49,011 nt of DNA from Paraphysomonas bandaiensis (taxonomy: Eukaryota; Protista; Chrysophyceae), in NCBI GenBank assembly GCA_965644295.1, contig CBFFRP010000206.1, positions 1 through 49,011 of the forward strand. The letters are read 5' to 3'. Shown here one piece after another: positions 1-48,812 of the stretch; the stretch's first letter is position 1, and every line of letters starts with the position of its first letter. The notes under the pieces were generated by a model, which was given only the letters and a program-made list of their open reading frames with translations, made no database searches and was not told the DNA's origin. The position numbers were made by a program, and so were the translations under genes.

Positions 1-1000
1 TATCTCAATAAGTACTAGAGTACCGTATACTCTGTACTCGAGTATGCGCTATAAAACTTGTGCAATTCAAGACATAGACATTCCGGTTTGCCCAAAGCTT
101 ACGGGTCTGCAGAACACATGCCCAGACGTAGCTCACGCTTGGCAACTAAGACCCCGCTTGCTAAAGGTGCTTTTCCAAGCCTGCCAGTCTTTATACCGAG
201 CTCAGAAACATGCTGTAAGTCTAAGTCTAGGCCTGGCAAGGTACGTAGGGGTCAACCTTCCCTGAAGGCTAGGAATCATGCACGCATACAGGCTTACAAT
301 GCTATGGCCATTGAATTGGATCTTGAAGCGCTTTTGTCTCGGTGTCCAGAAGGCAACGCTAAAGGTGTAGTCTCAGTACCTTTCTGCCACACGTCTAATC
401 CTGCTTCGTCGACTGAAGTGTGTTCCTTTTTCCTGGATTGGCATGCTGAACATGCCAATTCTGATAACCCCTTTGTCCACGTGATATCCGGTCCTAATGT
501 TGCTAACCCTGATGGCTCTGGTTCCGAGAAGGGAGTGGGGGCTTCCATTGCTCTCGCTCCTAGTGATACTGTGCCTGTATGTTTCTATGTGGGTGAGTTG
601 TATACTCGTGCTCGTAGACCTCCTCGTGGTCGTTATACTCTCGAGGTAGCACCTGGCAGTGGTATCTTTATTGATGCTGAATACGATTCCCGTGATCCTG
701 CGTACCATATGTTCCACGCACCCACTGAATATATGCGTGTGCCTCCTAATTATGCTCGCTATATCAATACTCTTAGCGAGGAGGATTTAGCCGCGGGAAA
801 GTAATTCAACTGCCGTTTTGCCGGTTGTCCCTGCGGTCATAATTGTATTGCTGTTTTTGTTACTCGCAATATAGCTGTTAATGAAGAATTGTTGATTCCG
901 TATCCCTTGTTGCGTTGACTCTCAGTAATTAATCTCATTGTCTTTTAATGCCTTGTACTATTTGTTCTTAGAAGCTACTCTATAAACCCCTAGGGTTACA
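1..1000 (-). mobile_element. Probable 3' LTR of a minus-strand Ty3/gypsy-like element; distal end not seen
   Basis: The minus strand reads A-tract, GGGGGGAAGAGGTAG (PPT, 1001-1045), then TGTAAC at 1000. The same PPT/TGTAAC arrangement occurs at 1516-1540 on the plus strand. Confidence 0.65.
118..918 (+). pseudogene. SET-domain lysine methyltransferase-like gene interrupted by one in-frame TAA (802-804)
   Basis: First in-frame ATG at 118 (MPRRSSRL...). SET motifs: KGVG, FYVGEL, IFIDA...NYARYIN. Reading through the TAA gives FNCRF...IAVFVTRNIAVNEELLIPY and a TGA at 916-918. TATAAAA at ~50-56. Confidence 0.8.
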
Positions 1001-1072
1001 CTACCTCTTCCCCCCTTTTTTTTTTTTTTTTTCTTTTTTTTTTTTCGAAATAGAATAAAAGTGAAGTCAAAA

Positions 1073-1195
1073 TTAATGCTGATTGACTTGGGGAAAACGT
1101 AGCGCAAAGTCGGAATCTACCAGTACCATAGTTGTCGGATCGAAGTCGCGATGTACGAAACATTTCACGTGATAGTTATCAAATCTGTATGTGGC
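1073..1195 (-). pseudogene. C-terminal fragment of a putative gypsy Pol (not in ORF track)
   Basis: Translates ATYRFDNYHVKCFVHRDFDPTTMVLVDSDFALRFPQVNQH*, homologous to ATYALDNYLVFAWGSVKTFDETYMVLVDADIAKRYPRIVE* of the plus-strand ORF. Followed by PPT and LTR start. Confidence 0.75.
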
Positions 1196-1199
1196 TTAT

Positions 1200-1509
1200 G
1201 GTCACAGCAGTGCAAGTAGGTGATAGAGTGTATGTGGATCTTCGTTTCTTTGGGGATCAGTGGTATCAGAGCTTGTTGGACCTTCCAGACTTTTCTACAA
1301 AATCGTATGTGGTGGTCTTCGAATACACGCATTGGTACCACAGGACATCTAAAAAGAAGATTAGCGCTCGTTTTCTGCTTAATGGTGCTACTTACGCCCT
1401 CGATAATTATCTTGTGTTTGCGTGGGGCTCAGTCAAGACCTTCGATGAGACCTACATGGTGCTGGTGGATGCAGACATAGCCAAAAGGTATCCCCGCATA
1501 GTTGAATAG
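1200..1509 (+). pseudogene. C-terminal fragment of a putative gypsy Pol (post-integrase region)
   Basis: ORF ends just before PPT AGAGAGGGGGAGGGGGCAG and TGTAAC. Its 5' end is truncated against the opposite-strand homolog. Confidence 0.65.
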
Positions 1510-1534
1510 CATAACAGAGAGGGGGAGGGGGCAG

Positions 1535-2317
1535 TGTAACGCCGAGGCGTCAAACTAATCACATACCACAAAAGACCAGTGAGGTTAATATGCTACAAGG
1601 GGGGCTCTAGTGGACTGTGTGTGTATGTACAGCCTGCATCTTATCTTCGGATGAAGACATACTTCACTCTCGGATTACAAGTGCCGCTGTTTTTGCTGTA
1701 TGGGCAATGGAGAGATCTGATTGGTGTACTCGAGTTATACTGTTTTGTATACTGTATGGAATACAGGCTGTATTGTCTATATGTATATGCTGTATAACGG
1801 TGTTGGAATACGGACTGTACTTGATTGGTGGTGATGTGTTTGCAGAGTGTGTTGTGTGACACGAGGTACATAAGTACGCAATGATGCAGTTATAGGTACA
1901 TGTAGGGAATATCATTATACAGATTATACAGCTGCTGTATTATGTATTACTGTTGAACGCTGATTGGCTAGTCACTGCATTTTTGGTCTGTGGCTGTTGA
2001 GTTGGTTTAAGGCTCTTCCTATAGGCCTCTACGTGAATCTTCCAGAAGGTGAATATCTCCACAAAATTGGTGAAATGTTGCTGAATTTTCTGCAGAATAT
2101 TGTTCTTTGTTCTCTGCTGTGTTTCTAGATAGTTCATAGAATGTAAATGGTTCTGTATGAGTTGTTTGTGTTCTATGTGCTGTCATTATTATGTTACTAG
2201 CCTTGCTGTTAACACGTTTGAGGAGGTGTCTTCAGATAAGTGCTTGAGGGTGCTCAGGCAGTTGCAGGGCAAAGTAATAAGCATTTTTATCTCTATATTA
2301 GCTAGTTACTTGTTACA
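1535..2317 (+). mobile_element. Gypsy-like LTR (TGTAAC...GTTACA) lying between a pol end and a gag start
   Basis: Preceded by a PPT, 6-bp inverted termini, followed by the gag ORF. The 3' end is inferred only from GTTACA at 2312-2317. Confidence 0.6.
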
Positions 2318-2462: not shown

Positions 2463-4022
2463 TTGAATAACGACATGGAATCTGCCAACTTGGAGGATAT
2501 ATTACGAACGATCATGCAACAATTGCAACAACAACAGCAGGATACGCATGAAATAAGGCAAGACATTCAAGAAATGAAACTGAGTATGCCTAGAAAACTT
2601 GAGCAAGTTGACCAGCGAGTGGATGCGTTGATAGAGGAAAAGCAAAAGAGCGATCAGAAAGTGAAGACTGTGCTGGAAAACATCAATGCCAGGCTGGAAA
2701 CTATGGAAACCAGAACTGCTATCCTGGAAGGGGAGAAAGAATTAACGGAGCAGCAGGACAGGGCGATTACCCATCCGAGCGCATCTAGAGAACGCAAGAC
2801 TATTTTCATGAAAGAGGTTGAGGAGACTACACATCTGGCGGAGAGAAGGCAAGTAGTTGTACAAATGCCTACTCCCTCTCATTCGCACATATTCCTAAAT
2901 TCAATGGACCTGGCGGACTATGCTCAATTTGTGACCAAGTGGTTTGACTGGCAGGTCAAATATGGTGTGAGACTAGAGCCGGCCCTCATTGTTTCCCAAA
3001 GCATTCGAAATCTACTAATTTTCAACAATGATATGACGGAATCTCAGTTTCAAGAACTCTCACCTGAACAATTTTGCAAGCTGATGGCTAAAGAAACTCA
3101 AGTACTGTCCAAGCTCGAGTTTTCCAACACGTTAAGGCATGCCCTAAGAGACATCAAAAGGTTAAACTGGGAAAGAGTTAGACCGAATACTCACGAGAGG
3201 TTCTTCCAAGGCATTCTGAGGCGTAGAGACATATACTTAAGGACCTTCAGGATTATTATGGAGAACAATAGCCAGTATTGCCCAGACCTGGAAGGCAAGG
3301 ACTTTGGATTAGCCCAAGTATTCCTAAATTTGATCGATGATACTTACAACAAGACTGTCTTGGCCGAAATACCCAAGGTCAAGGCAGGGAACTACTCCAA
3401 GGTTGAAGAGTTCCTGGAAGCTTATGTTAAGAAGGCTAAGGAGCACTATGACACGTCGAAGCGTATTAGACTGGTGCCATACAGTGGTGAGGACTATAGC
3501 ATGAAAAGTCATGACATGCGCAAGAACAAGCCTTACTCTTCACAGGAAGACAAGTACAAAGGACATGAGACAAAAACGTACCCGATGACCAGTGGGGAAG
3601 CTAAGCCTTTGCACCAGATAAATGACTTCAGTGACGATGAAGATCAGGAGCCACGGGAATCCAGAAATGCAGAGCCAGACTCAGATGACGACTCTGACTA
3701 TGAGGAAGATCCAAAGACCACTGCAGAAGGTCATGACACGAATCAGAGCTACGAGGACAAAGTGGACCAGCAGACGGCAAGAGATCAGGACACAGACTAC
3801 AGAAGGCTACAAGCCATAGAGGCATCTGCTACTGGGTTGGGATGTGTCAATTTCGCCTTGTATGGAAAGTGCTTTCGAGGAGACCAGTGCAAATATGCCG
3901 GAAGTCACAATGAGAAGTGTGCAAAGGACTGCAGACAGTGGATGATGAAGAAGTTGGCGACGATGGAAAGAGATGGTCCGGGACCTCCTAAGATAATGAA
4001 GCGTGATCCAACGAAATCTTGA
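2463..4022 (+). CDS. gag: Gag-like protein of a Ty3/gypsy-like retrotransposon (coiled-coil N-terminus, C-terminal CCCH-like finger)
   Basis: 519-aa ORF downstream of the LTR and in frame with an aspartic protease. First ATG at 2475. C-x8-C-x5-C-x5-H at 3843-3908. Confidence 0.7.
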   Translation: MNNDMESANLEDILRTIMQQLQQQQQDTHEIRQDIQEMKLSMPRKLEQVDQRVDALIEEKQKSDQKVKTVLENINARLETMETRTAILEGEKELTEQQDRAITHPSASRERKTIFMKEVEETTHLAERRQVVVQMPTPSHSHIFLNSMDLADYAQFVTKWFDWQVKYGVRLEPALIVSQSIRNLLIFNNDMTESQFQELSPEQFCKLMAKETQVLSKLEFSNTLRHALRDIKRLNWERVRPNTHERFFQGILRRRDIYLRTFRIIMENNSQYCPDLEGKDFGLAQVFLNLIDDTYNKTVLAEIPKVKAGNYSKVEEFLEAYVKKAKEHYDTSKRIRLVPYSGEDYSMKSHDMRKNKPYSSQEDKYKGHETKTYPMTSGEAKPLHQINDFSDDEDQEPRESRNAEPDSDDDSDYEEDPKTTAEGHDTNQSYEDKVDQQTARDQDTDYRRLQAIEASATGLGCVNFALYGKCFRGDQCKYAGSHNEKCAKDCRQWMMKKLATMERDGPGPPKIMKRDPTKS

Positions 4023-13629: not shown

Positions 13630-16600
13630 TTATGCACACCAATTTGGCGCAATAATGCTTTCACAACGAGCGCATATATCAGTAAATTCGCCACTCCGAC
13701 CATCACCTACTACATCGGCACCTACACTTGTACTATAATACCAACATCGCTCGCATTTAAGACCTGATGCACGACCCACACCAATCGTAACTCCACTGGA
13801 AGATTCAGCTGCAGAAAGCACAGCATTGCTATTACGTTGAACCACTTGTAATGCGTCTACAATATAAACCTCAGACGCCATAAGAATAAATCTCAGATCA
13901 TCCACAGAATTAGTTTGGGAGTAACGAGGTTCACTTATTGCTTCTCCACCATTTCCTACCATAGAACGCAATCTGTCCTCCAGCTCTGGCTTTGCATTCT
14001 TATCTACGTGTATGAACACTTTGCATTCCTGTGGCGCTCCTATCTCTTTTGCAGCGCGCAGTACTTCCATACACCGATTTGTATCGTCTTTAATTAACTG
14101 AATCGTCTCCCAAAGTTCCATCTCGTGTAAATTAAACTGCGTAGCATTCTGTACCCATCCTCGCTCAAATATCGATCTTGTTGGAGCTGGGTAGGGATAA
14201 TTCAGCCATACGTCTTCTGCCATGTGGGGAAGTACGGGCGCCATCATCAGTACATACTGCTCAAGTACATACGAAAGGACTGTCTGGCAAGACTTTCTGC
14301 GGTAATCACACTCCTGTGATATATACAATCTGTCCTTCGAGATATCCAAGTAAAAGTTAGACAGATATTTGTTTCCAAAATTGGTAATAATCTGCATTGC
14401 ACGATAAAACTGGTAGGATTTGTACGCTTCATCCACATCACGAAACGTCAGAGACAGCAAACCCAATATGTACTTATCCAAGGAAGGCATGTCTTTAATG
14501 GCTACGACATCAGTCCTAGGGTTGAAACCACTGAGACTTCCCATTAAAAACCTCAGAGTATTGCGTAGCTTGCGGTAAGAATCTGAAACCCCTTTTATAA
14601 TATTGCTTCCAATGCAGATATCATTGCTGTAGTCAACTCCAGCAACCCAAAGACGTAAGGTATCCGCACCATATGCCGGGTCATTCTTAAGGTTTGAACC
14701 ACCATTGATAATTAATTCAGGATTTATGACATTCCCAAGAGATTTAGACATTTTGTAGCCCTTCTCGTCCAGCACAAAACCATGAGTGAGAACAGCTTTA
14801 TACGGGGCTTGTGCAGTGTTAGATTGAGCAACCGCGGTCAACAAGGAGCTCTGAAACCATCCCCTGTGTTGATCCGACCCCTCCAAGTATAAATCCGCCG
14901 GAAAAGTTAAGTATTCACGAGATTTAAGTACACCTGCCCACGAGGTCCCAGAATCAAACCATACGTCCATCGTGTCGGATCCCTTCTCGTATAAATGTGC
15001 AGGAATTCCGGAAGGCAGAAGTTCGTCGGTGCTCATTTCCCACCATGCATCAGCCCCATGCTCATATATCACACGGGCAATATGCTCAATTGTCTCGGGT
15101 GTAACGAGAGCTTCTCCAGACTCGACGTGGTAAAATACTGGGATAGGAACTCCCCACGCACGTTGACGAGAAATACACCAATCCTTACGAGAAGATACCA
15201 TGGATGATATCCTGTTGCGTCCGACAGCAGGTACCCACTCCACAGAATTAATCGCTGCAAGAGCATTATCGCGGCATGTGTCAACACTTGCAAACCACTG
15301 TGCTGTTGTGCGGAATATTGTGGGTTTCTTGGTCCTCCAATCATAGGGATACTTGTGAGTGTAAAGCTCTTCCTTGATGAGAGCACCTGATGACTTGAGA
15401 GCAGATATGACGGCTTCATTTCCCTCTTCCAGTACGCACAACCCTTCCAGATCTCTACCCGCCTCAAGAGTGAACCGCCCTAGTTCATCAACTGGAGAAA
15501 AAGGTTCTAAACCGAGCCGCTGTCCAACAATGAAATCCTCGGCCCCGTGACCAGGTGCCGTGTGTACTAAGCCTGTGCCACTGTCTGTATTTATGTAGTC
15601 TCCCCCAACAACCACCTGCAATTCTCTGGTAAGAGTGAGTGGGTGCTGATAACAAGTACCAGACAGATCACTGCCTCTAAGCGTACCGCATATCGATATA
15701 TATCTTGTTGATATATTAGATACAGCACAAAAGGATTCCACCAGGGCACTGGCCACAACATAGCACTTGATGGCTGCAGTGGAGCAATCTGCTAGTACAG
15801 AATACTCAAGGTCGCCACGCACAGCCACAGCCTGGTTGGCGGGTAGCGTCCATGGAGTAGTAGTCCATACCACCAAGAAAGTGTTGAGAGCACGTTTAGG
15901 TAGCATTGCAGCCAGCGGATCAGATGGACGACGCACAGACATACCAACATAAATTGATCGGGATACGTGTTGGTCATTGTACTCGAGCTCCGCTTCTGCC
16001 AAAGCAGATTGTGATGAGGGGCTCCAATGCACTGGCTTGCAACCACGGTATATGTGACCCTTGCTGATCATCTCTCCAAAAACTCTTATTTGTGCAGACT
16101 CGTATTCCTTTTGTTGTGTTTTATAGTGAGCGTCCCAATCGCCCCACACACCATACCGTTTGAACCCTTGCATTTGTGATGCGATAGCGTCATCAGCGTA
16201 TCTAGAAGCCTTTCTGCGAAGTGTAATCGGAGACAACTTTTCTCTCTCCTTGGCTCCCATGCTTTGCAGCACTTTCAACTCAATTGGCAACCCATGGCAA
16301 TCCCATCCAGGAATATACCGAACTTTCTTTCCATTTAGAATGTTATACCTATTAATAATATCTTTAAGAATCTTATTTAGTGCATGACCGATATGTAGAT
16401 CCCCATTGGCATACGGAGGACCATCGTGCAGTACAAATGGTTCGCCTCGGCTGGATTCATGAAGTTTCTCGTAAATACGATTCGTAGCCCAAAATTCCTG
16501 AATTAGAGGTTCTCTCTTTGCTGCGTGTGCTCGTTGTTCGAAAGTAGTTTTCGGCAGAATAACAGTGTGACTATATTTGCCTTCCTTGGGTTTGACATTC

Positions 16601-16680
16601 TTACGAGTAGTTGACGATAATCGCAAACAACGCAATGCAGTATAGGTTGGTGCTCTTGCTTGTTGCCCTAAGCGCATCAT
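13630..16680 (-). CDS. ileS: Isoleucyl-tRNA synthetase, type 1 (bacterial/organellar), intronless
   Basis: LHDGPPYANG, HIGH, GWDCHGLPIE, WTTTPWT, EGSDQHRGWF, KMSKS and a C-terminal CERCW zinc finger. Probable start at MMRLGQQ (transit-peptide-like). Confidence 0.95.
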   Translation of the reverse strand: MMRLGQQARAPTYTALRCLRLSSTTRKNVKPKEGKYSHTVILPKTTFEQRAHAAKREPLIQEFWATNRIYEKLHESSRGEPFVLHDGPPYANGDLHIGHALNKILKDIINRYNILNGKKVRYIPGWDCHGLPIELKVLQSMGAKEREKLSPITLRRKASRYADDAIASQMQGFKRYGVWGDWDAHYKTQQKEYESAQIRVFGEMISKGHIYRGCKPVHWSPSSQSALAEAELEYNDQHVSRSIYVGMSVRRPSDPLAAMLPKRALNTFLVVWTTTPWTLPANQAVAVRGDLEYSVLADCSTAAIKCYVVASALVESFCAVSNISTRYISICGTLRGSDLSGTCYQHPLTLTRELQVVVGGDYINTDSGTGLVHTAPGHGAEDFIVGQRLGLEPFSPVDELGRFTLEAGRDLEGLCVLEEGNEAVISALKSSGALIKEELYTHKYPYDWRTKKPTIFRTTAQWFASVDTCRDNALAAINSVEWVPAVGRNRISSMVSSRKDWCISRQRAWGVPIPVFYHVESGEALVTPETIEHIARVIYEHGADAWWEMSTDELLPSGIPAHLYEKGSDTMDVWFDSGTSWAGVLKSREYLTFPADLYLEGSDQHRGWFQSSLLTAVAQSNTAQAPYKAVLTHGFVLDEKGYKMSKSLGNVINPELIINGGSNLKNDPAYGADTLRLWVAGVDYSNDICIGSNIIKGVSDSYRKLRNTLRFLMGSLSGFNPRTDVVAIKDMPSLDKYILGLLSLTFRDVDEAYKSYQFYRAMQIITNFGNKYLSNFYLDISKDRLYISQECDYRRKSCQTVLSYVLEQYVLMMAPVLPHMAEDVWLNYPYPAPTRSIFERGWVQNATQFNLHEMELWETIQLIKDDTNRCMEVLRAAKEIGAPQECKVFIHVDKNAKPELEDRLRSMVGNGGEAISEPRYSQTNSVDDLRFILMASEVYIVDALQVVQRNSNAVLSAAESSSGVTIGVGRASGLKCERCWYYSTSVGADVVGDGRSGEFTDICARCESIIAPNWCA

Positions 16681-17211
16681 TATAATATGTATATCTCTAC
16701 GTGGTCCACATGAATACCTACAAAATACAACAGAGAAATCCGCATTCAATAAGGATAACAAATGATCGACTGTCCTTGTACACGATATTTTGTACTTGCT
16801 TTCAATGACATCGGGAGCCATATGTTGATCTCCAGATTTACTTCATACGATGTACGATCTCACTACAAATAGCGCACAAAAGGTCGAAAATTCATCGTAA
16901 ACCTCCGGATTTGATGAATTGAAAAAAACAAATAATCGCGATATACAGAGTATTTATATCGCACACCCTTTCAAAATAAAGCTATTTTTCACTAAACACC
17001 TGATATTTACGTATTATATTTAGCAACCCTCCAAAGATTCTGTACATTCCTGGCTATATATATACCAATACACGAGCAGTACGTACAGCAGTAGATGTTG
17101 TGGAAAGGTGCTATCATGAAGAATTTATTGTGATGTCGTTACATTGACAAGATTTCTAAGCTGGAACAGTAATAGAGATGTGATGGCGGTGTTAACGATC
17201 GAATATTGCTG

Positions 17212-19755
17212 ATGTTTGACCGGATACGACTGTTTCGAGTCCTTTTGTCGCTTACAAGAGAGAGTGATTATTTTATTCTCGCTCAAGACGCCTATGTGGT
17301 CTTACACAGCATATTGGAGCAACTTGCTAATCTTGATACAATCATAGATGAGTTTTATGAAAAAATCGATACCCTTATAGAAGAGGCAGCGAAAGATGTT
17401 GAGATTGAGGCCTATAAGTCTGCAGTATGTAGCCTCCAGATGCTGATGATGGAACGAGAATCCTGGTGTAATATGCTGCAGCCATTTCTTTGTGACTGTG
17501 AAGAGTTTTGGTTCTGTTCCCCTGTTGATCGTGTCACTGGGAAGTACAATGCTATTTCTCTGAGGAGCCTTCAATCGTCAGAAAAACGTTGGCATAAGTA
17601 TCACAATCTCAGAGAAGAAATTCCCACTGCAATCATACTTAAGCTGCAGCGATTCCGCTCCCGAGTAACGGATTTAGTTCAAGAACATTTTTCTGAGCTC
17701 TTGTCAGCGACACTTGTTGAAGAAGAGGCTGAGAGATCAGCAAGATCTCAACTATCTAGATTGTCTTGTAAGTATGCCAATATCATTTCTTGTGGCATCA
17801 CTGAGGAATTTGATGCCACCAACAATTCTGTTACTGTCGTATGTAATTTTCCGGTGACCCATTTTTTTGTTGCCGATCATAAGTTCGCGAAACTGTTAGG
17901 TTATTCAACGACGAGGCTTCTCGCTATACCATTTGTAAATTTTATTATCAACACAGGGACCACGACATCTGTGGTTCGAAATATAGTGGAGTTACAGTCA
18001 CCTACCCATGTGACATTATTCTACCGCACAGCTACATGTTCCGTAGTCGTAGTATCGTGGGAAATCTGCCCGAAGCCGATTGGAAGTCACGCAGTCGTTG
18101 CTCGAGGAATTAATATAACTCGTGAATTAGAGGAATCTAAACAATATCAAACAGCTAATATTCAGAAGATGCTTCGACAGTGGCTACACTCTATCCGCAA
18201 CGCAAGTTTCCAGCAGCAGGCACAGGTAATTCGCGACGATATTCAGGCCCTCGAGAAAAGTATTGATGATGATGAGTTCAGCAAGGGTTTTCAGCATGTG
18301 TACGATGGGCTGAGAACTCTTATATACACCGCTAAAGCTTCGGTTGGGCTTATCGGTAAGTCATCGTTATGATGGTGACATGTATCTACATTATGTGCAA
18401 CTGCTATGTATATATGTTTTGTACCACGATTTATTGACGCACGTTTTGAAATGACAGATCAAGCACTGAATTCTAAGGGTCTACTGCAGTATACCTCTCT
18501 TCATGATTTTGTGAATTCTATTGCAACTTTTTCCTCGGTATTTTCGAAGAGCGAAGGTATCGACGACATTTTGAACACATTTGACCTCCACTTTAACGAC
18601 AATGTGACTACCCCCGAGCAGTTGCGGTCGATATATGTCCAAGGAGACATGTGTAGTCTGCAATCTCTTATTGACAATATATACTCCAATGCCATAAAGT
18701 TTACAGACCACACACTTGGTGTAAATGTCGTTATGCATATTGAGCACCAAGGAGACTCAGTGCACTGCACTCTTCAGATCACGGACAATTCCCCTCTTGG
18801 CTTGCCCCAGAATGTGATTCGTTATTTTCAAAAACACATAAGTCCATGTAAAGTCGACGATCAGCGGTCCAGACGTTTTGGTAGCTCTGTAACGAGTACC
18901 GATTCAGATGATGCATGTATGGATTTTGATTACAAAGAATTACCTGACGATTGGCATGGAGGTTGGACAAATCCATCTCCACCAGTCTCAAGAGGAGTCA
19001 GCCGTAGCAACAGTAGGAAGGCGAGTATGTCAGCTCAATATGGCTCAAGATCCACTGTTGTAGACACAAAGGACGGTTCCATACACACTGGCATACCACA
19101 CATTGTTGAATTATTTCATAAGCTCACGGAAAGTGCCGAGTATAACTTTGATATGGTTGTGACTGCGAGAGCGAATGGTTCGTCGTACACATTGTCCTTC
19201 TCGTTGGGGGTACTGTCGGCAGCGGAGTTGGCATTAGACGTCGAAGACGACTACCCCGAGAATAATACGGCACTTCAAAATATCAGACCTATGGAGGGAA
19301 AAGAGTCTATACAGGGAATGGATGGAACGGAATTCCTGAGTGCCGAAAGAGACCATCTACTAAAACCAACTGAAGAACAATATATGCTGGTTGTGGATGA
19401 TAGTCATGTAATTCGGCGAATTGTAGGCAGATATCTTGAGAAATATGAAGTGCGATATCATGCGTGTGCAGACGGAACAGAAGCATTTGAGTGGTTCAAA
19501 GAACATAGTGACATATGCTTCGGATTAATTACAGATTTGGAGATGCCACGAATGGGCGGGGACGCATTGATACAGGAAGTCAAAGCCTTACGCCCGACGC
19601 TTCCCTGCGTTATTGTATCTGGAAACGAAATACCAATTGGCAGTAGACCCTCTGGAGCCGCTGCTTGTTTTATAAAGCCTATATCGATGACTAGCATGAA
19701 TGATCTCTTGCATGAACTCTACCGGTGTGCAGCAGCACTTCGTAGGGAGGCATAG
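17212..19755 (+). CDS. Hybrid histidine kinase-like protein (PAS-like, HisKA, HATPase, receiver)
   Basis: Intron 18356-18457 joins two ORFs. H-box WLHSIRN, N-box NIYSNAIKFT, receiver LVVDDS/ITDLEMP/KP. The start is uncertain. Confidence 0.8.
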
Positions 19756-43519: not shown

Positions 43520-46500
43520 TGTTGAGATCTGAAGATTCTATATACTTGCAATTGAGTGCAGTATTATGTGAGATGCAAGGATCGAAAGATATATATGTAA
43601 TTAGTACATTATATTATGTAGTATGAAACTGAAGTAGAAGTGGATGACTATACAGGATACGATCACTGAGTGGGTGGTTTGTACACTATAGTAGTAAATG
43701 AATGGTGTTGAACACATCGAACACAACTTAGGTTCTTTATCATGTAATGTTTATAATTTCATCTTATCAGTTGAGAATAGTAAACCTTAGCAAATAATGT
43801 CAACTTCTGTTATGGTAGCGAATGCTAGTTGTAGGGATGGGGAAGATGACAAGAAGCTACGGTTTGACAAGAACCAAGCAGACTATTCAGCGAGAAAAAT
43901 CAAGATGCATCTAATGAAGAAAAACCGAAACCATCTTGGCTTGGAGGACCCGCCAGCCGGAGGAAGGAATTTAGAGTCATGGAGAGAGCGTAATGATACC
44001 TGTGTTAGTACTATTTGGGAGGCTTGCGAGCATGACCCTGATGTGTTGGAGGTAGCCAATCAATATTTGGAGGGGAAGGCAATTTTACCTGCTGATGATC
44101 CTGCTAAGGAGGTGTTATCCAGTGAGCTCCTTCAGACACTGGTTGATAGGTTCAGAGGCGAGATTGGGACTGTATTGGAGAAGACTACGGCAGAATACCA
44201 TTCGTTCAAAATAAGGCCGGGGGAAAAGGTGTCTGTTGGGGTAGATCGACTGAACGGTATAATCCAGAAGCTCATAAAATTGGGACAACCGCAGACAGAG
44301 GCAAGTAAATTAGCAAAGATAAAAGCAGCGCTGCAGATAGAGGAATTACATGATTTATGGATGTCGGTAGCGATGATGCCTAAAGCAACAACTACATTTG
44401 ATTCGGTGAAAGAGGCTTGTGAAGAGTATGACGAGGCTATGACGCAGCTGAAGAAACTAAAGGGAGACAAATCTGAAGAGATCAATTTTACGGCGTCGAA
44501 GGAGCCAGTGGTTTGTTCATTTTGTCGGAAGAAGGGACATGTAGCAGCGAATTGTTATGCTAAGGAACGACAAAGAAAAATGGATAAGTTCAAAAGAAAA
44601 GGGAAGACAAAGGAAAAGGCTTCGAAGAGTGTGCAGCAGCCAGGATCAAAGGATTATACTGGTTGTCATATCTGTGGAGATTTTAGTCATAAAGCCCGAC
44701 AGTGCAAGTCGAAAAAACGGAAGAACATAAAAAACCCGGATAATGAGAATCCTCGAAAATCGAACAGGAAATTCGAGACAGAATGGAAGAAATACGTCAA
44801 CGACGGAGAGTCGTCGGATGATGAAGCGAATATGTTTGGAGAAGAGGTTTTGCTATCGGTGGATACGTCGGAAGAACCTCGTGTATATCTGGACAGTTGT
44901 GCAAGTAAAAGACTGTTTATAGTAAAGGATAAAATTGCACTGGAGTCATTTACTCCTGAGTTTGGGGCAATCCAACTAACTAGAAAGGGTTCTCAATTGG
45001 AGACACAGGGGGCTGGTACATTCGGGGAATGGAGAGACATCAGAGTTAGTGAAGAAGCGGTGAAGAACATTGTGTCAGGAGGGATGCTGAGATCAATGGG
45101 ATACGGATTACAACTGCTTCGAAAGCCTAAAATCGTGGAATTGGACTCTGGAAACGAGGTGTTGACTGGAGAGTACGATGAGCATGGAGGGATGCCGTAT
45201 GTGGACTTGATGGAGGTGTTAAATCTGCCAAATGTGTCTATGTGCAATCAGATGGAGGAGGTAAATTTGTCGGATAATACAGGACAAGATGCGTTGGATC
45301 GCTTACATGAGCGTACTGGACATGTCTCGAAATCGAAGTTATTAGAAGCTCACCGACACATGTTATTCAGAGGATCAGGACTACAACGACATCACCTTTC
45401 GAAGGCAAAGGAGAAGAGTTGCAAGAAACCCCTGTGTAAATGGTGTGCCAAGGCGAAGATAACCAGGCATTCGTTCAAATCACGGGACAACGAAGAGCTA
45501 AGCGCAGTCAGGTTCCTGGAAAGAGTAACAGCGGACATCTCCGTCTATCTCAATTGTGAATCCAGACAAGGGTATAAGTACGTGCTCCTATTTACGGACT
45601 TAGCAACAAAGATGATATGGGAATATGGATTGAGGACTCGAAGCGGAGAGGAGGTGTTCAAATGTCTACGACACTTGTGCGAGGTCCACTTAGTGAAGTA
45701 CGAGGGGTGGAACCGTATAGTGGAGTATCATGCCGATGGAGGATCCGAACTTATTAGTCAGCAGATAAGAGAGTATCTGTTGCAGCGATATGGGACTCGG
45801 GTGTCACATACAACACGAGACACGCCAGAGCTCAACGCGGTGTCTGAGAGGAAATTCCGAACAATTGGGGAGATGACACTGACGATGTTGACGGCATCTG
45901 GACTTCCAAAGTCGTTCTGGTCTGATGCTTATCAAACTGCATGTTACATTGTGCGACGAATGCCAACTCGGACGTGGCAAGGATGGATGTCTCCATATGA
46001 GTGTGTCCCAGGGGGAGCGTTCCCAGCCTATCGTGGCTACGGAAATGGGGGTGCAAAGCATATGTGCTAACACCCAAGGCCGACAGGAGGAAGGACTGGG
46101 AGGACAAAGCAATGACAGGTTATTTCATAGGGTATCCAGCTGATCGAAAAGGATACAAGGTGCTAGTGGGGGACACCGTAGTACACTCTGTACATGTATT
46201 ATTTGATGAATCGGTACCTGAGAGGTCTCAGGATTATTATAGAGAGCTGGAGGAGGCTCAAGTGGCTATAGATCCCGAGGCTCGTCAACCGGGTGAGTTT
46301 GAGTATCTTATCGGAAAGCACCATGAGGATGGTGGTCTGCTATACAAGACTAACAGAGTGGTGATAAGGAAGGGACTTATTGTGGGATACCGGTCGTTGG
46401 TTACTGGTAACCAGGTTCAAGTGGAGGATAAAACTCCTATTCATATTGCTGACATCAAGAAGATGACAGAGGATCTTGCGCAGAGGGTGGTTAGGGCCAG

Positions 46501-48812
46501 AGTTACTGACAACCGTGACGGCGGTATCAGCGGAGTGGTGCCACAGCAGTCGGAAAGTGGGCAGGTGCAGCCCCAGGCTGACTCAGCATTACCTTCGGGG
46601 GAAGGGACCCCTGCCGAGAATCATCCGCACGGCAAACGCGCAAGAACTCCAAGGACGGTAACGAATGTGTCGGTGTTAGGACAAATCCATCATTTGAGTG
46701 ATGAGAGTGATGTGAGTGACCTTTTACAGGAGGCAGACTCAGTGTGGATGTCAGCGGAAGAGTCGACAGTGCCTCAGACACATCGTGAGTCCTTGGAGAG
46801 TGCCGAGCACAGGGAGTGGAGACGAGCTCGCCGTGTAGAGCGAGAGGGTTTGGCGAAGCGAGATACCATGGAGGTGACTCGTATACCGGACGGAGTCGTC
46901 CCACTGCACTCCAAGTACGTCTATGGAAAGAAGTACGATAAGGAGGGAGAGGTCCGCCGATATAAGGCTCGTCTTGTAGCAATCGGTTGTGGACAGCAGT
47001 CGAGTGGTTGGGCGAACCATTTCGCACCCGTTGTTAAGGGGGTAACAGTGCGACTGTTAATCGCCATAGCTTTCGTGATGAACATGGTAATTCATCAACT
47101 GGATGTGTCTAACGCATTTCTATATGCAGATATAGAGGGGGATGTATATATGAAGGCAACTCCGGACTTTCAGCTGCCTGAGGGGTACTGCTTTAAGTTG
47201 AAGAAGTCGTTATACGGGCTTCGGAGTTCCCCGCGGTCGTGGTGGAAAACATTGGATAAATTCATACGATCTATGCATTTTAAACCATGTGTATTAGACC
47301 CGTGTTTGTATTATCAGTATAAGGGCGATGAATTGATATTATTAACGATATATGTGGATGATATCCTAGTGTTAGGTCGTGATGTCAACATAGTGAAGGA
47401 TATTAAAGCTCAACTGTGTGCCCGGTTTGATATGAAGGATATGGGCGAGATGGAACATTTTCTGAATGTTCGAGTCACAAGAACGCCAGAGTATATTCGT
47501 CTTGACCAATCAGTATATGCGGCTAAGATCTTAGAAAAGTTTGAAAAGTATCTTGGGCCACCGCGAAAGGTACGGAAGAGTCCTCTACCGGCGGAAGCAA
47601 TGGATTTAGTGGCAAAAGGGGCGCGGCATGAGCATACCGAGGAGGAACAGCTTATAGTAGATAACTTCCCATATCGGCCGCTGATAGGTGCATTACTATA
47701 TCTATCGATGAACACGAGGCCGGATATTGCCTATGCAGTGGGAGTACTGTCTCGGTTCAGTAATAAGGTGAATATTGAAGTATGCAAGCTATTAACACAT
47801 GTATGGCAATATATTCGTGGTTCTATTGACAAAGGGATTCAATATGGGAGTAGACGGTTCGACTTCCATATGTTTACTGACGCGGATTGGGCGGGAGATC
47901 AGCTCTCCAGGAAGTCCACGTCGGGGTACGTTGGGTTTGCAGCGGGAGGGCCTATAGTCTGGCAGTCCAAACTGCAGACGACAGTGGCAACGTCAAGCAT
48001 GCAGTCTGAGTATCAGTGTATTTACTCGGGTCTCCAAGAAGTGCTATGGGTTCGGGGGGTGACGGGTGAGATTAAGTTGAGGCTCATCAAACCCACACCA
48101 TTCTTCATCGACAGTCAGAGTGCCCAGGATTTGGCCGAAAATCCAGTGTTTCACAAGAAGTCGAAGCACATTGAGATTAAGTATCACATGGTGAGAGAGC
48201 ACGTGGATCCCAATCAGTTCAATACGATTAAGTTAGTGCATGTGCATACATCGCAACAAGCAGCAGATATTTATACAAAGTCATTGGTTGGTTTATCATA
48301 TATGGAGCAGAGAAAGAGAAATCTTGGAGAGAAAGTTAAGAGTTCCACTGAAGTGATTAATGAGGGACCAAGGGATAAAAGAAGGCGCAAGTAGGTACTG
48401 AGTTTTTTAGACAGAGGTTTAGACTTAGAGATGAGTCTATTTTACTGTCAAGAATTTTTTTATCTCAGGCATTCAATAGCTGGGAGGCGTCATAAGTACA
48501 ACACTCAATTGAGGGGGAGTGTTGAGATCTGAAGATTCTATATACTTGCAATTGAGTGCAGTATTATGTGAGATGCAAGGATCGAAAGATATATATGTAA
48601 TTAGTACATTATATTATGTAGTATGAAACTGAAGTAGAAGTGGATGACTATACAGGATACGATCACTGAGTGGGTGGTTTGTACACTATAGTAGTAAATG
48701 AATGGTGTTGAACACATCGAACACAACTTAGGTTCTTTATCATGTAATGTTTATAATTTCATCTTATCAGTTGAGAATAGTAAACCTTAGCAAATAATGT
48801 CAACTTCTGTTA
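43520..48812 (+). mobile_element. Full-length Ty1/copia retrotransposon (family B), 5293 bp
   Basis: 293-bp LTRs 43520-43812 and 48520-48812 appear identical; TSD GTCCG; PBS TGGTAGCG; PPT GAGGGGGAG. Confidence 0.98.
43797..48394 (+). CDS. Copia Gag-Pol polyprotein with one -1 frameshift at ~46010-46016
   Basis: Two CCHC knuckles, protease YLDSCAS, HHCC (HERTGH..CKWC), integrase D-D-E, RT YVDD, RNase H DADWAG, in PR-IN-RT-RH order. Confidence 0.93.

Follow-up and report, generated by a model that had tools for sequence, protein, structure and literature searches.

Retrotransposons are usually viewed as passive targets of silencing by histone methylation. Accessory genes associated with LTRs are known from several systems. 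The superantigen ORF sag of MMTV lies wholly inside the U3 of an LTR of about 1.3 kb, so that it is present at both ends of the provirus. HBZ of HTLV-1 and ASP of HIV-1 are antisense genes driven from the 3' LTR; their coding regions are internal to the provirus, and neither is an enzyme. The antisense ORFs of Retand/Tat-type elements lie between pol and the 3' LTR, occur in a single copy per element and have no known function. Extra antisense ORFs at the 3' side have been described for these plant Ty3/gypsy elements (PMC11963269).

The window analyzed here is the whole stretch of 49,011 nucleotides of contig CBFFRP010000206.1 from Paraphysomonas bandaiensis. Its first 1,204 positions probably hold the 3' end of a Ty3/gypsy element with an antisense SET accessory gene in the U3 of the LTR, a reading in which the structural claim carries the most weight. 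Like MMTV sag, this is an accessory coding gene inside U3 that is present in both LTRs; unlike sag, which is a sense gene for an immune superantigen in a vertebrate retrovirus, it is antisense, has a SET fold and belongs to a protist Ty3/gypsy element. With HBZ and ASP it shares the antisense accessory arrangement, but its coding region lies inside the LTR and its product has an enzyme fold. Both its position inside the LTR and its recognizable enzyme fold set it apart from the Retand/Tat ORFs.

Small SET proteins are also known outside cellular genomes. The giant dsDNA virus PBCV-1, which infects Chlorella, encodes vSET, a protein of 119 aa with demonstrated H3K27 activity that is thought to act on host chromatin. 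The protein predicted here is likewise a minimal SET domain without pre- or post-SET regions in a mobile or viral genome, although it has an additional N-terminal helical part (residues ~46-112). The Legionella proteins LegAS4/RomA (PDB 5czy, 8sr6/8swi) are the best PDB match of the family profile (E 1.5e-8), and RYIN(F/T) without the canonical His is found in both; however, they are secreted bacterial effectors with ankyrin repeats, and the similarity amounts to ~20% identity in the SET core only.

As for retroelements that have acquired an enzyme modifying nucleic acids or the epigenetic state, de Mendoza and colleagues reportedly described in 2018 retrotransposons that captured DNA cytosine methyltransferases. 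An orchid Ty3/gypsy element contains an ALKBH m6A demethylase domain (PMC9289625). The present element resembles both in having acquired such an enzyme, but their enzyme domain forms part of the internal coding region or adjoins it, and they have neither an LTR-embedded antisense gene nor a SET domain. In another stramenopile, Phytophthora infestans, a proto-Helentron includes a stand-alone SET ORF that is short and lacks introns (Thomas et al. 2014, PMC4067079) and that is canonical and Clr4-like (smart00317, E 3e-24); such elements also carry OTU proteases (PMC4067079). That element is a rolling-circle DNA transposon with occasional SET cargo, whereas the SET described here is divergent, of an NT type, and has co-diverged with a retrotransposon pol. 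A full-text literature search returned no account of an LTR with a SET gene in it, and the Phytophthora Helentron ORF was the nearest precedent that it returned (PMC4067079).

Structure of the locus

The features of the locus are as follows.

1-1000, minus strand: inner 1000 bp of the 3' LTR (1395 bp) of a minus-sense Ty3/gypsy element, 97% identical to positions 20187-21383 of contig C656
1-34, minus strand: end of the LTR block (U5/R/promoter side), common to all LTRs of the element family
35-973, plus strand: SET cassette, the U3 segment peculiar to the SET-bearing LTR variant
50-56, plus strand: TATA-like box TATAAAA in the sequence, 62 nt before the SET ATG, a candidate antisense promoter
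118-918, plus strand: SET-domain ORF of 266 codons in U3, antisense to the element (ATG at 118, TGA at 916-918)
802-804, plus strand: premature stop TAA at codon 229, the sole in-frame stop of the window copy; a sense codon in the C656 copy
974-1000, minus strand: conserved 27-bp 5' terminus of U3, TGTAACC on the minus strand, also found in SET-less LTRs; similarity to at least 14 other copies begins at 974
1001-1047, minus strand: polypurine (A-rich) tract belonging to the minus-sense element; the plus strand shows pyrimidines here
1073-1195, minus strand: last 40 pol codons and stop (integrase C-terminal extension)
1197-1204, no strand: breakpoint at which the SET-bearing element is cut short and meets the C-terminus of a plus-sense gypsy pol; C656 and C491 remain similar up to 1204

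The contig starts inside the LTR, at about LTR position 396 counted from the U5 end, and the end of the SET ORF lies 82 bp from the LTR edge at 1000. From this edge onward the minus strand reads TGTAACCCTAGGGG, with the LTR start TGTAAC. The same strand encodes, from 1195 to 1076, the 40 residues ATYRFDNYHVKCFVHRDFDPTTMVLVDSDFALRFPQVNQH; the stop codon occupies 1075-1073, and this pol tail is 97% identical to residues 1227-1264 of the pol of C656 (1266 aa, RT-RNaseH-integrase). Beyond the breakpoint, pol-like sequence continues on the plus strand at 1201-1500; in contigs from public runs, the loose ends at 1197 and 1201 carry on as intact families do. A first-pass annotation made from the letters alone had read here a Pol-like C-terminus, a polypurine tract followed by an LTR start, a compact ORF on the opposite strand 82 bp inside the LTR, a TATA-like box, an N-terminus beginning MPRRSSRL and one premature TAA, all of which were found again at the same places. 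The window copy itself is dead, since the element is truncated and the SET ORF contains a premature stop.

Copies of the SET gene in the genome and in metagenomes

Contig C656 carries a young, complete element with an intact copy of the SET ORF (C656:20304-21104), open for 266 aa; lineages B and C also have naturally intact ORFs. The C656 element encodes a 549-aa gag containing a CCCH finger and a pol with the Pfam domains RVT_1 (325-453), RT_RNaseH (546-652) and rve (801-887), and by these domains and their order (RT-RNaseH-IN) it belongs to Ty3/gypsy. Its LTR of 1395 bp is delimited by the polypurine tract and, at the element's opposite end, by a direct repeat (385 bp assembled, 100% identical); it encloses the entire SET ORF and extends across it. 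In both long copies, C656 and C491, the 5' LTR is cut by the contig end. The same layout of a polypurine tract followed by TGT(A/G)AC recurs in C656, C378, C599 and metagenome elements.

Far from being single-copy, the SET ORF has 57 matches in the genome by tblastn and 63 by profile, and an exhaustive phmmer search, from which the homologue set was taken, revealed relatives in 51 clusters among 1.8 billion representative proteins (a word-index search gave just two matches). An ORF with so many relatives is far beyond chance. The exact cassette, by comparison, is present in only three genome copies (the window, C656 and C491), all of them 3' LTRs of what we call lineage A. In SET-less LTRs of the same family, an unrelated, ORF-less segment of 668 bp takes its place (~30 scored LTRs), and positions 94-522 of the C656 LTR match ~30 scored copies at 88-97% (353 first-look candidates). 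The cassette is therefore a minority U3 variant of its element family in this genome, and since most LTRs of the family lack it, SET is not needed in cis for that family's spread. The 668-bp segment was also considered as a decayed SET gene and rejected, as it has no tblastn match and contains stops throughout all six frames. A match on contig C234 (63-72% identity to residues 185-265) was likewise rejected as a host source gene, being a short, internally deleted relic of lineage A. SET domains also lie within giant open frames on contigs C566, C644, C408 and C476.

The first-pass annotation had also proposed that the gene is duplicated at both ends of the element, and this was borne out by complete elements of related lineages. 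The LTR pair on C378 (1059 bp, 100% identical) is flanked by the target-site duplication (TSD) CGGT and that on C599 (1.43 kb, 98.4% identical) by ATGG, and each LTR of the two pairs holds a SET ORF or its remnant. The TSDs of these complete elements are 4 bp long; lineages C and F have the ORF in both LTRs, and seven same-strand SET pairs with a spacing of 5.5-7.9 kb occur in the genome. For lineage A, the window, C656 and C491 provide the 3' LTR copies, and the 5' LTR copy is seen via metagenome contig L076 only, where the ORF lies in a 5' LTR adjoining a gag 98% identical to that of C656. In three further metagenome contigs (L079, L080 and L100), the sequence runs round through one LTR only, with gag on one side and the polypurine tract and pol on the other. 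SET is antisense to pol or gag at every genome locus with pol, and antisense to gag-pol in all 13 informative marine metagenome contigs. A repeat pair on C338 (lineage D) could not be confirmed as a clean LTR pair: its unit, 1.1-1.7 kb long and interrupted by an insertion, lacks TG..CA ends, and its flanks contain no pol.

Assignment to the SET fold and sequence motifs

Pfam SET (PF00856) matched 39 of the 41 family members, with a best E-value of 1.1e-13. Taken alone, both the window pieces (17.9 bits) and the intact C656 ORF (19.8 bits) score below the Pfam cut-off of 22.4; in the window pieces, the sub-threshold match covers the 37-aa tail only and there is none on the first 228 aa. The SET assignment thus rests on the family and the fold. 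The family profile matches ~95 SET chains in PDB with E-values down to 1.5e-8, including LegAS4 (the best), EHMT2, KMT5A, KMT2C and PRDM9 at ~1e-8. An AF2 (AlphaFold) model with a pLDDT of 87.1 gave Foldseek probabilities of 1.00 to G9a, Clr4, MLL1, SET7/9 and SET8, and VIA alignment superposed 117-120 residues on MLL3, Set1 and MLL1 (Z 11.5, rmsd 2.3-2.9 Å). Every one of the nearest structures is a histone KMT (MLL/Set1, SET8, ATXR5, G9a).

The SET core spans approximately residues 103-262. Across the 41 sequences, the mean column identity is 22%, while GxG, YxG, N211..R214-Y215-x-N217, N231 and E257..Y262 are kept, with G139, Y157, G159, N211, R214, Y215, N217, N231, E257 and Y262 invariant or nearly so. 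The window protein reads RYINT in place of the canonical RFINH. The first-pass annotation had correctly read this NH motif as NT but had listed it with the premature stop as a peculiarity of this copy; the His is in fact replaced by T, S or G in all family members. Lineage A additionally has P for the D of ELxxDY, and the protein ends four residues past the Tyr at the catalytic position, with no post-SET region. By profile and model, members of this family are SET-fold proteins in which, except for the His, the motifs for SAM binding and catalysis are retained. With that His gone family-wide, and with P for D in the DY of lineage A, the sequence by itself does not assure activity.

The N-terminus of the protein is basic and, in the AF2 model, disordered. 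MPRRSSRL is identical in P0001, an orthologue with 75% identity (residues 11-20 share 2 of 10), and is absent from every other lineage; those lineages share a basic RRGxxS(L)K stretch instead. RRSSRL had been likened to the HMGN nucleosome-binding motif (HMG14/17 profile, RRSARLSA core). This gained no support: residues 1-228 gave no match to any Pfam family at E ≤ 1, and the motif is conserved in one orthologue only. We therefore treat RRSSRL as a lead towards a possible arginine-anchor motif and not as a sign of HMGN membership.

Selection and transcripts

A dN/dS comparison among copies, as suggested in the first pass, gave a value below 0.1 between lineages C and D (dN 0.22, dS > 2.3). Over all inter-lineage pairs, pS ranges from 0.72 to 0.85 versus 0.19 to 0.53 for pN. 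Ten full-length SET frames are open, and contigs of at least 10 metagenome samples encode the SET protein with 100% identity. Identities of pol and SET are correlated (Spearman 0.76, over 15 non-independent pairs). Judged from these comparisons, the SET ORF is under purifying selection and co-diverges with pol, down to a pol identity of ~50%.

Two MMETSP transcript contigs correspond to family loci: L077 to the window locus (99.5% identity) and L078 to the C338 paralogue (98.8% identity, 915 nt). The 3' end of L078 has six A's that are absent from the genome, ~20 nt past AATAATAAT, in the SET sense. As the C338 repeat is unconfirmed as an LTR, L078 represents a paralogue expressed as mRNA and not strictly an LTR copy. 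L077 skips 47 nt (1349-1395) that are bounded by GT..AG when read on the minus strand, a hint that this contig is at least partly minus-sense RNA, antisense to SET. In one transcriptome-sized run (X1), a single contig from a strandless assembly covers window positions 1-1002 with no differences. At the TATA-like box, C656 carries TATAAGA where the window has TATAAAA.

Proposed mechanism and alternative explanations

It is very probable that the cassette is an LTR-borne accessory gene for a SET-fold protein maintained by selection. Its predicted product, 266 aa long, combines a minimal SET lysine-methyltransferase domain with an N-terminus that is basic and disordered. We lean slightly towards an active methyltransferase; a chromatin target is a plausible but more tentative suggestion. 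A gene at this position is duplicated during reverse transcription, so that each new insertion has it at both ends, and each LTR is a self-contained gene.

Enzymatic activity, substrate, benefit to the element and a divergent promoter are what we infer beyond this point. In element sense, the LTR would consist of the U3 start TGTAAC, ~80 bp, the antisense SET ORF, and then ~510 bp with the promoter region, R and U5. Such a layout would place the transcription start of SET back-to-back with that of the element, and the 5' LTR may then act as a divergent promoter, with genomic RNA running toward gag and SET mRNA away from it. Polyadenylation of the SET mRNA would occur short of the LTR edge. Its product would most likely be nuclear and methylate a lysine of a nucleosomal histone or of another chromatin protein, by which the element might counter or steer host silencing, or restrain its own activity.

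Among other explanations, the one that survives best is that the gene is selected but encodes a pseudo-enzyme, a SET-fold binder of nucleosomes or histone tails that serves as a decoy, tether or integration-targeting factor. The family-wide NT/NS/NG, the P in ELxxDY of lineage A, the early end without post-SET and the basic, disordered N-terminus would all suit such a protein, but GxG, YxG, N...RYxN, FN and E...Y262, (near-)invariant in the family, form the pattern required for SAM binding and catalysis. Moreover, the His is missing as well from LegAS4 (aligned as RYINF), which gave the best PDB sequence match and is an active histone methyltransferase. We consider a pseudo-enzyme rather unlikely.

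It is less likely still that an active SET enzyme acts outside chromatin, for instance on Gag or integrase of the element or on a host restriction or RNA-silencing factor. The nearest structures are histone KMTs without exception, and the conserved basic RRGxxS(L)K region fits nuclear or nucleosome targeting. On the other side, non-histone substrates are common among SET enzymes, the structural matches include SET7/9 and SETD-type enzymes, and the sequence offers no clue to specificity.

We disfavor, as very improbable, the explanation that the frame is kept open by a constraint on LTR DNA or RNA (regulatory sequence or antisense RNA) and not by protein function. U3 is regulatory DNA and non-coding antisense LTR transcripts are common, but lineages that have reached saturation at synonymous sites still share their amino-acid motifs (dN/dS < 0.1 between C and D), the frame is open in ten or more diverged copies, and the predicted fold has a pLDDT of 87. 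Finally, chance adjacency of a host SET gene to a truncated LTR, to which the mere three copies of the exact cassette in the assembly and the end of similarity to at least 14 family copies at 974 might point, is refuted by the present data, as LTR sequence shared by the family lies on both sides of the cassette (1-34 and 974-1000), the cassette has moved with the element to three loci and is found in the 5' LTR of L076, and paralogues occupy both LTRs of TSD-flanked elements.

The preferred reading, a selected SET-fold accessory gene within the LTR, can be extended to a broader scenario, which as a whole is somewhat doubtful. An old clade of marine-protist Ty3/gypsy elements would have a bidirectional LTR, with genomic RNA made in one direction and a mobilome-specific, His-less SET KMT in the other. 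Anchored to nucleosomes by its basic N-terminus, this enzyme would alter histone marks and in this way escape or steer host silencing. This SET subtype would have been exchanged with LINE-like and Pol-fusion retroelements of the same genome as a shared counter-defense module.

Implications

For genome annotation, ORFs of this kind in marine protist genomes and Tara Oceans metagenomes will be labeled as small host "SET domain proteins", and LTRs that contain a gene will confuse LTR finders. For the biology of these elements, the finding means that a retrotransposon lineage has kept its own SET-fold gene, and every insertion, even a solo LTR, delivers a copy with a putative promoter. An active protein would count as a histone writer encoded by a transposon, and it would allow a direct test of whether mobile elements manipulate host chromatin in the way that vSET and the Legionella SET effectors do.

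Structure of the window copy

Positions 1-1204 of the window represent the 3' end of a minus-strand retrotransposon, and the pol stretch within it shares 97% identity with residues 1227-1264 in the 1266-aa pol of the intact reference copy on another contig of the assembly, C656. The pol end, PPT, LTR start, ORF and TATA-like box located by the first-pass annotation were rechecked in the sequence, and all coordinates proved correct.

Features at the start of the window
1195-1076 (stop 1075-1073), minus strand: last 40 residues of the pol C-terminus, by translation
1047-1001, minus strand: purine-rich tract, from the sequence
From 1000, minus strand: LTR start TGTAACCCTAGGGG, from the sequence
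118-918, plus strand: SET ORF (ATG at 118, TGA at 916-918), interrupted in frame by TAA at 802-804
50-56: TATAAAA, from the sequence
1201-1509, plus strand: pol C-terminus of a second, abutting gypsy element, with PPT at 1515-1534 and LTR from 1535 (starting TGTAAC)

The LTR is already under way at the contig start (window position 1 corresponds to LTR position ~396). Similarity to the C656 and C491 copies ends at 1204, where the plus-sense gypsy element begins, and thus the element in the window is cut short and its ORF interrupted. The premature TAA reported earlier is indeed present at 802-804, its C656 counterpart being uninterrupted over 266 aa; the two ORFs differ by five synonymous, four non-synonymous and one nonsense change. 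The plus-sense fragment (1201-1540 and 2463-4022) has a pol C-terminus with 53% identity to residues 1164-1261 of C656 pol, and its 519-aa ORF at 2463-4022 resembles gag and includes a CCCH zinc finger; no SET-like ORF was found in the LTR of this fragment (from 1535).

An intact SET gene within a gypsy LTR

Genome-wide DNA search (62.6 Mb, 669 contigs) found window 1-973 three times, here and on C656 and C491 (96-98% identity), and window 974-1197 in at least 14 copies (87-89% identity). On C656, a 385-bp direct repeat (C656:19792-20176 and C656:27161-27545, 100% identical, the second copy cut by the contig end) brackets gag (549 aa) and pol, both open, and the element is complete. Its pol domains are ordered RT, RNase H and integrase, as in Ty3/gypsy elements. 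The LTR adjoining the PPT is 1395 bp long (C656:19792-21186) and encloses the whole uninterrupted SET ORF (C656:20304-21104), which bears out the proposal that the ORF is carried within a gypsy LTR.

When the whole C656 LTR was used as query, ~30 scored LTRs (353 first-look candidates) proved to share the 429 bp on the U5 side and the initial 27 bp of U3, and the intervening 939 bp (window 35-973, the SET cassette) were restricted to the three copies. Typical LTRs have an unrelated 668-bp segment in its place, in which neither an ORF nor tblastn similarity to the SET protein was found. The two long copies of lineage A (the lineage of the window, C656, C491 and the metagenome contig L076), C656 and C491, have their 5' LTRs absent from the assembly, and L076 provides this missing evidence: next to a gag 98% identical to C656 gag at the DNA level come the PBS region and then an entire 5' LTR, which holds a 266-aa ORF (75% protein identity to C656) and keeps ~120 bp more of the typical U3. 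Since the cassette occupies few LTRs, the other segment fills the rest and L076 retains extra typical U3, the cassette acts like an exchangeable module of U3. The C656-type family can spread without it in cis. Most C656-type LTRs (the locus C12:14008-15342 and ~30 others) lack the cassette and contain the ORF-less 668-bp segment, with internal regions ~96% identical to C656; such SET-less copies may derive from the SET-bearing form and outnumber it.

SET-bearing LTRs in a wider clade

The genome contains 57 matches to the intact protein (tblastn) and 63 to the family profile, among which seven same-strand, equal-score pairs lie 5.5-7.9 kb apart (C599, C338, C70, C378, C645, C153 and C226). Both copies of the C378 pair reside within 1059-bp LTRs that are 100% identical, with a 4-bp duplication (CGGT) at the flanks. 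Those of the C599 pair reside within 1.43-kb LTRs (98.4% identical) flanked by ATGG, one adjoining the PPT and the other a PBS-like GTAATTAATTAC. Duplication of the ORF at both element ends, as had been suggested, is shown for related lineages by these two LTR pairs with their 4-bp duplications. The sequence GTAATTAATTAC is a palindrome at the primer-binding-site position, adjoining the 5' LTR in lineages C and F (the complete elements) and in L076 (loci L069/L074/L076); in appearance it is unlike the usual tRNA-complementary PBS.

Wherever a neighbouring pol was visible in the genome, the ORF lay on the opposite strand, converging on the pol C-terminus. It was likewise antisense in all 13 public metagenome contigs with detectable gag or pol, lying upstream of gag or immediately beyond the end of pol. 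Three metagenome contigs (L079, L080 and L100) wrap around via a single collapsed LTR that is bordered by gag at one end and by PPT-pol at the other. Compared with C656, metagenome SET-bearing elements are 50-71% identical in pol and 25-41% in SET. An LTR-borne SET ORF characterises an entire clade of elements. In a Tara Oceans contig (L085), a SET LTR of lineage C (742-1479) is immediately preceded by a C-terminal fragment of a lineage A SET (2-154, 82% identical), an arrangement that reads as SET-bearing LTRs nested within or next to one another in wild populations.

The protein is a divergent SET domain

Single proteins fall just under the Pfam SET threshold (19.8 bits for the C656 protein, against 22.4), so the assignment rests on family, profile and structure evidence. 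An exhaustive search gave relatives in 51 clusters (81-372 aa), and SET clusters were also returned by a language-model feature search. PF00856, the model on which the SET call had been staked, is matched by 39 of 41 aligned members (best E 1e-13), and the PRDM PR-domain model by 20. The family profile detects PDB SET enzymes at E ~1e-8 (LegAS4, EHMT2, KMT5A/SET8, KMT2C, ATXR5 and PRDM9). The AlphaFold model built from the family alignment (mean pLDDT 87.1) has a Foldseek probability of 1.00 to G9a, Clr4, MLL1, SET7/9 and SET8, and VIA-align superposes it on MLL3, yeast Set1 and MLL1 (Z 11.5, rmsd 2.3-2.9 Å, 117-120 residues).

The GxG motif reads KGVGA in this protein and GKGVFA in the family, the YxG motif is FYVGE, and FN231C and E257-ELLxx-Y262 are conserved. 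At N211..R214-Y215-I-N217 the protein has RYINT where the canonical form is RFINH. The first-pass annotation read this NT correctly but took it as peculiar to the window copy; the His position is T, S or G in all members, so it is a character of the whole family. LegAS4, the best PDB sequence match and an active enzyme, likewise lacks the His (RYINF). The protein ends four residues past Y262, and hence there is no post-SET. Residues 1-40 are basic and predicted to be disordered. The N-terminal MPRRSSRL, previously likened to HMGN, does resemble arginine-anchor motifs such as that of HMGN, and it is identical in the lineage A orthologue P0001 (75% identical protein), in which the following ten residues are not; however, the region has no profile match in Pfam and the motif is confined to lineage A. 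This lineage also has a four-cysteine cluster, NCRFAGCPCGHNC, at C656 residues 231-244 (window 808-849), where the family has 'DESGxDV'; P0001 retains this cluster, as in part (AGCPCGYDC) does a relic on C234, and it may form a small metal site.

Selection, history and expression

Pairwise Nei-Gojobori estimates were obtained from a handful of copies. Between element lineages, pS is 0.72-0.85 (synonymous sites saturated) and pN 0.19-0.53; lineage C versus D (C338) gives dN 0.22, dS >2.3 and dN/dS <0.1. Ten full-length open frames exist in the genome, and metagenome contigs from at least 10 samples encode the lineage C protein at 100% identity. Pol and SET identities co-vary (99/91, 85/54, 65-69/31-44 and 51-57/29-34%; Spearman 0.76 over non-independent pairs), a pattern that fits one old acquisition followed by co-descent in which SET has evolved at about twice the rate of pol.

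The MMETSP and EukProt transcriptome collections include a 228-aa product identical to that of the truncated window ORF. Its transcript, the 1628-nt MMETSP contig L077 (unstranded over the SET ORF), matches window 1-1633 at 97-99.5% and spans the locus-specific junction at 1204, and therefore derives from the window locus. It skips 47 nt (1349-1395) whose ends are CT..AC on the plus strand, that is, GTAAGT..AG on the minus strand. This looks like a minus-strand intron, so that at least part of the L077 RNA would be antisense to SET; the sequence suggests a small intron in RNA antisense to the pol of the plus-sense element. The skip occurs in contigs of three public sequencing runs (X1, X2 and X3), with the unskipped form also in X3 and alone in X6. 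A second transcript contig, L078 (915 nt), shares 98.8% identity with the C338 paralogue, whose repeat is not confirmed as a true LTR, and contains only the ORF and a 104-nt leader. Its last six nucleotides, ~20 nt past AATAATAAT, are A's in place of the genomic TTTATG, which marks them as a poly(A) tail on RNA of the SET sense. In lineages B and C, similar AATAAT-rich motifs are found after the stop codon.

Other SET loci and host context

The family profile, mostly along its whole length (E down to 5e-25), also picks up SET domains that lie inside very long open frames; these are probably LINE-like or Pol-fusion retroelement polyproteins.

SET domains in long open frames (family profile)
C566:51-728, frame of 1960 aa
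C644:3368-4045, frame of 3731 aa
C408:261873-262544, frame of 1116 aa
C476:5065-5406, frame of 1947 aa (only E 9e-6)
C505:4172-4684, frame of 614 aa

Other features of the window
13630-16821, minus strand: host gene, intronless bacterial-type isoleucyl-tRNA synthetase (1062 aa, FPG/IleRS zinc finger)
18406-19755, plus strand: host gene, 449-aa protein with a response-regulator receiver domain
43797-48394, plus strand: Ty1/copia-type element, with an integrase core in ORF 43797-46070 and an SH3-like domain and RVT_2 in ORF 46001-48394

Genome-wide, at least seven intact silicon-transporter genes (PF03842) and no light-harvesting chlorophyll a/b-binding candidates (PF00504) were found. Together with the MMETSP transcriptome, this gene content suggests a heterotrophic, non-photosynthetic silicifying marine protist.

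Proposed role of the LTR-borne SET gene

A SET ORF has been described in a Phytophthora proto-Helentron (PMC4067079), and other accessory domains in LTR elements (PMC9289625, PMC5408684 and PMC11963269). Accessory genes in LTR retroelements are already known, as are SET proteins carried by transposons or viruses; no SET gene inside an LTR was found in the full-text literature searched.

In element sense, lineages A and C share a layout of U3 start, 80-190 bp, antisense ORF and ~510 bp to the U5 end. Because only this ~510-bp end block and the first 27 bp are common to SET-less LTRs, the element's promoter, R and U5 must lie within the block. Transcription of SET would then start back-to-back with the sense start of the element. 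The 5' LTR would fire divergently, with genomic RNA in one direction and SET mRNA in the other; SET mRNA from the 3' LTR would converge on pol, and the genomic RNA would include the antisense of SET. Most simply, the predicted SET protein would be a nuclear lysine methyltransferase acting on nucleosomes, which may counteract silencing, set a mark that guides integration, or damp the element.
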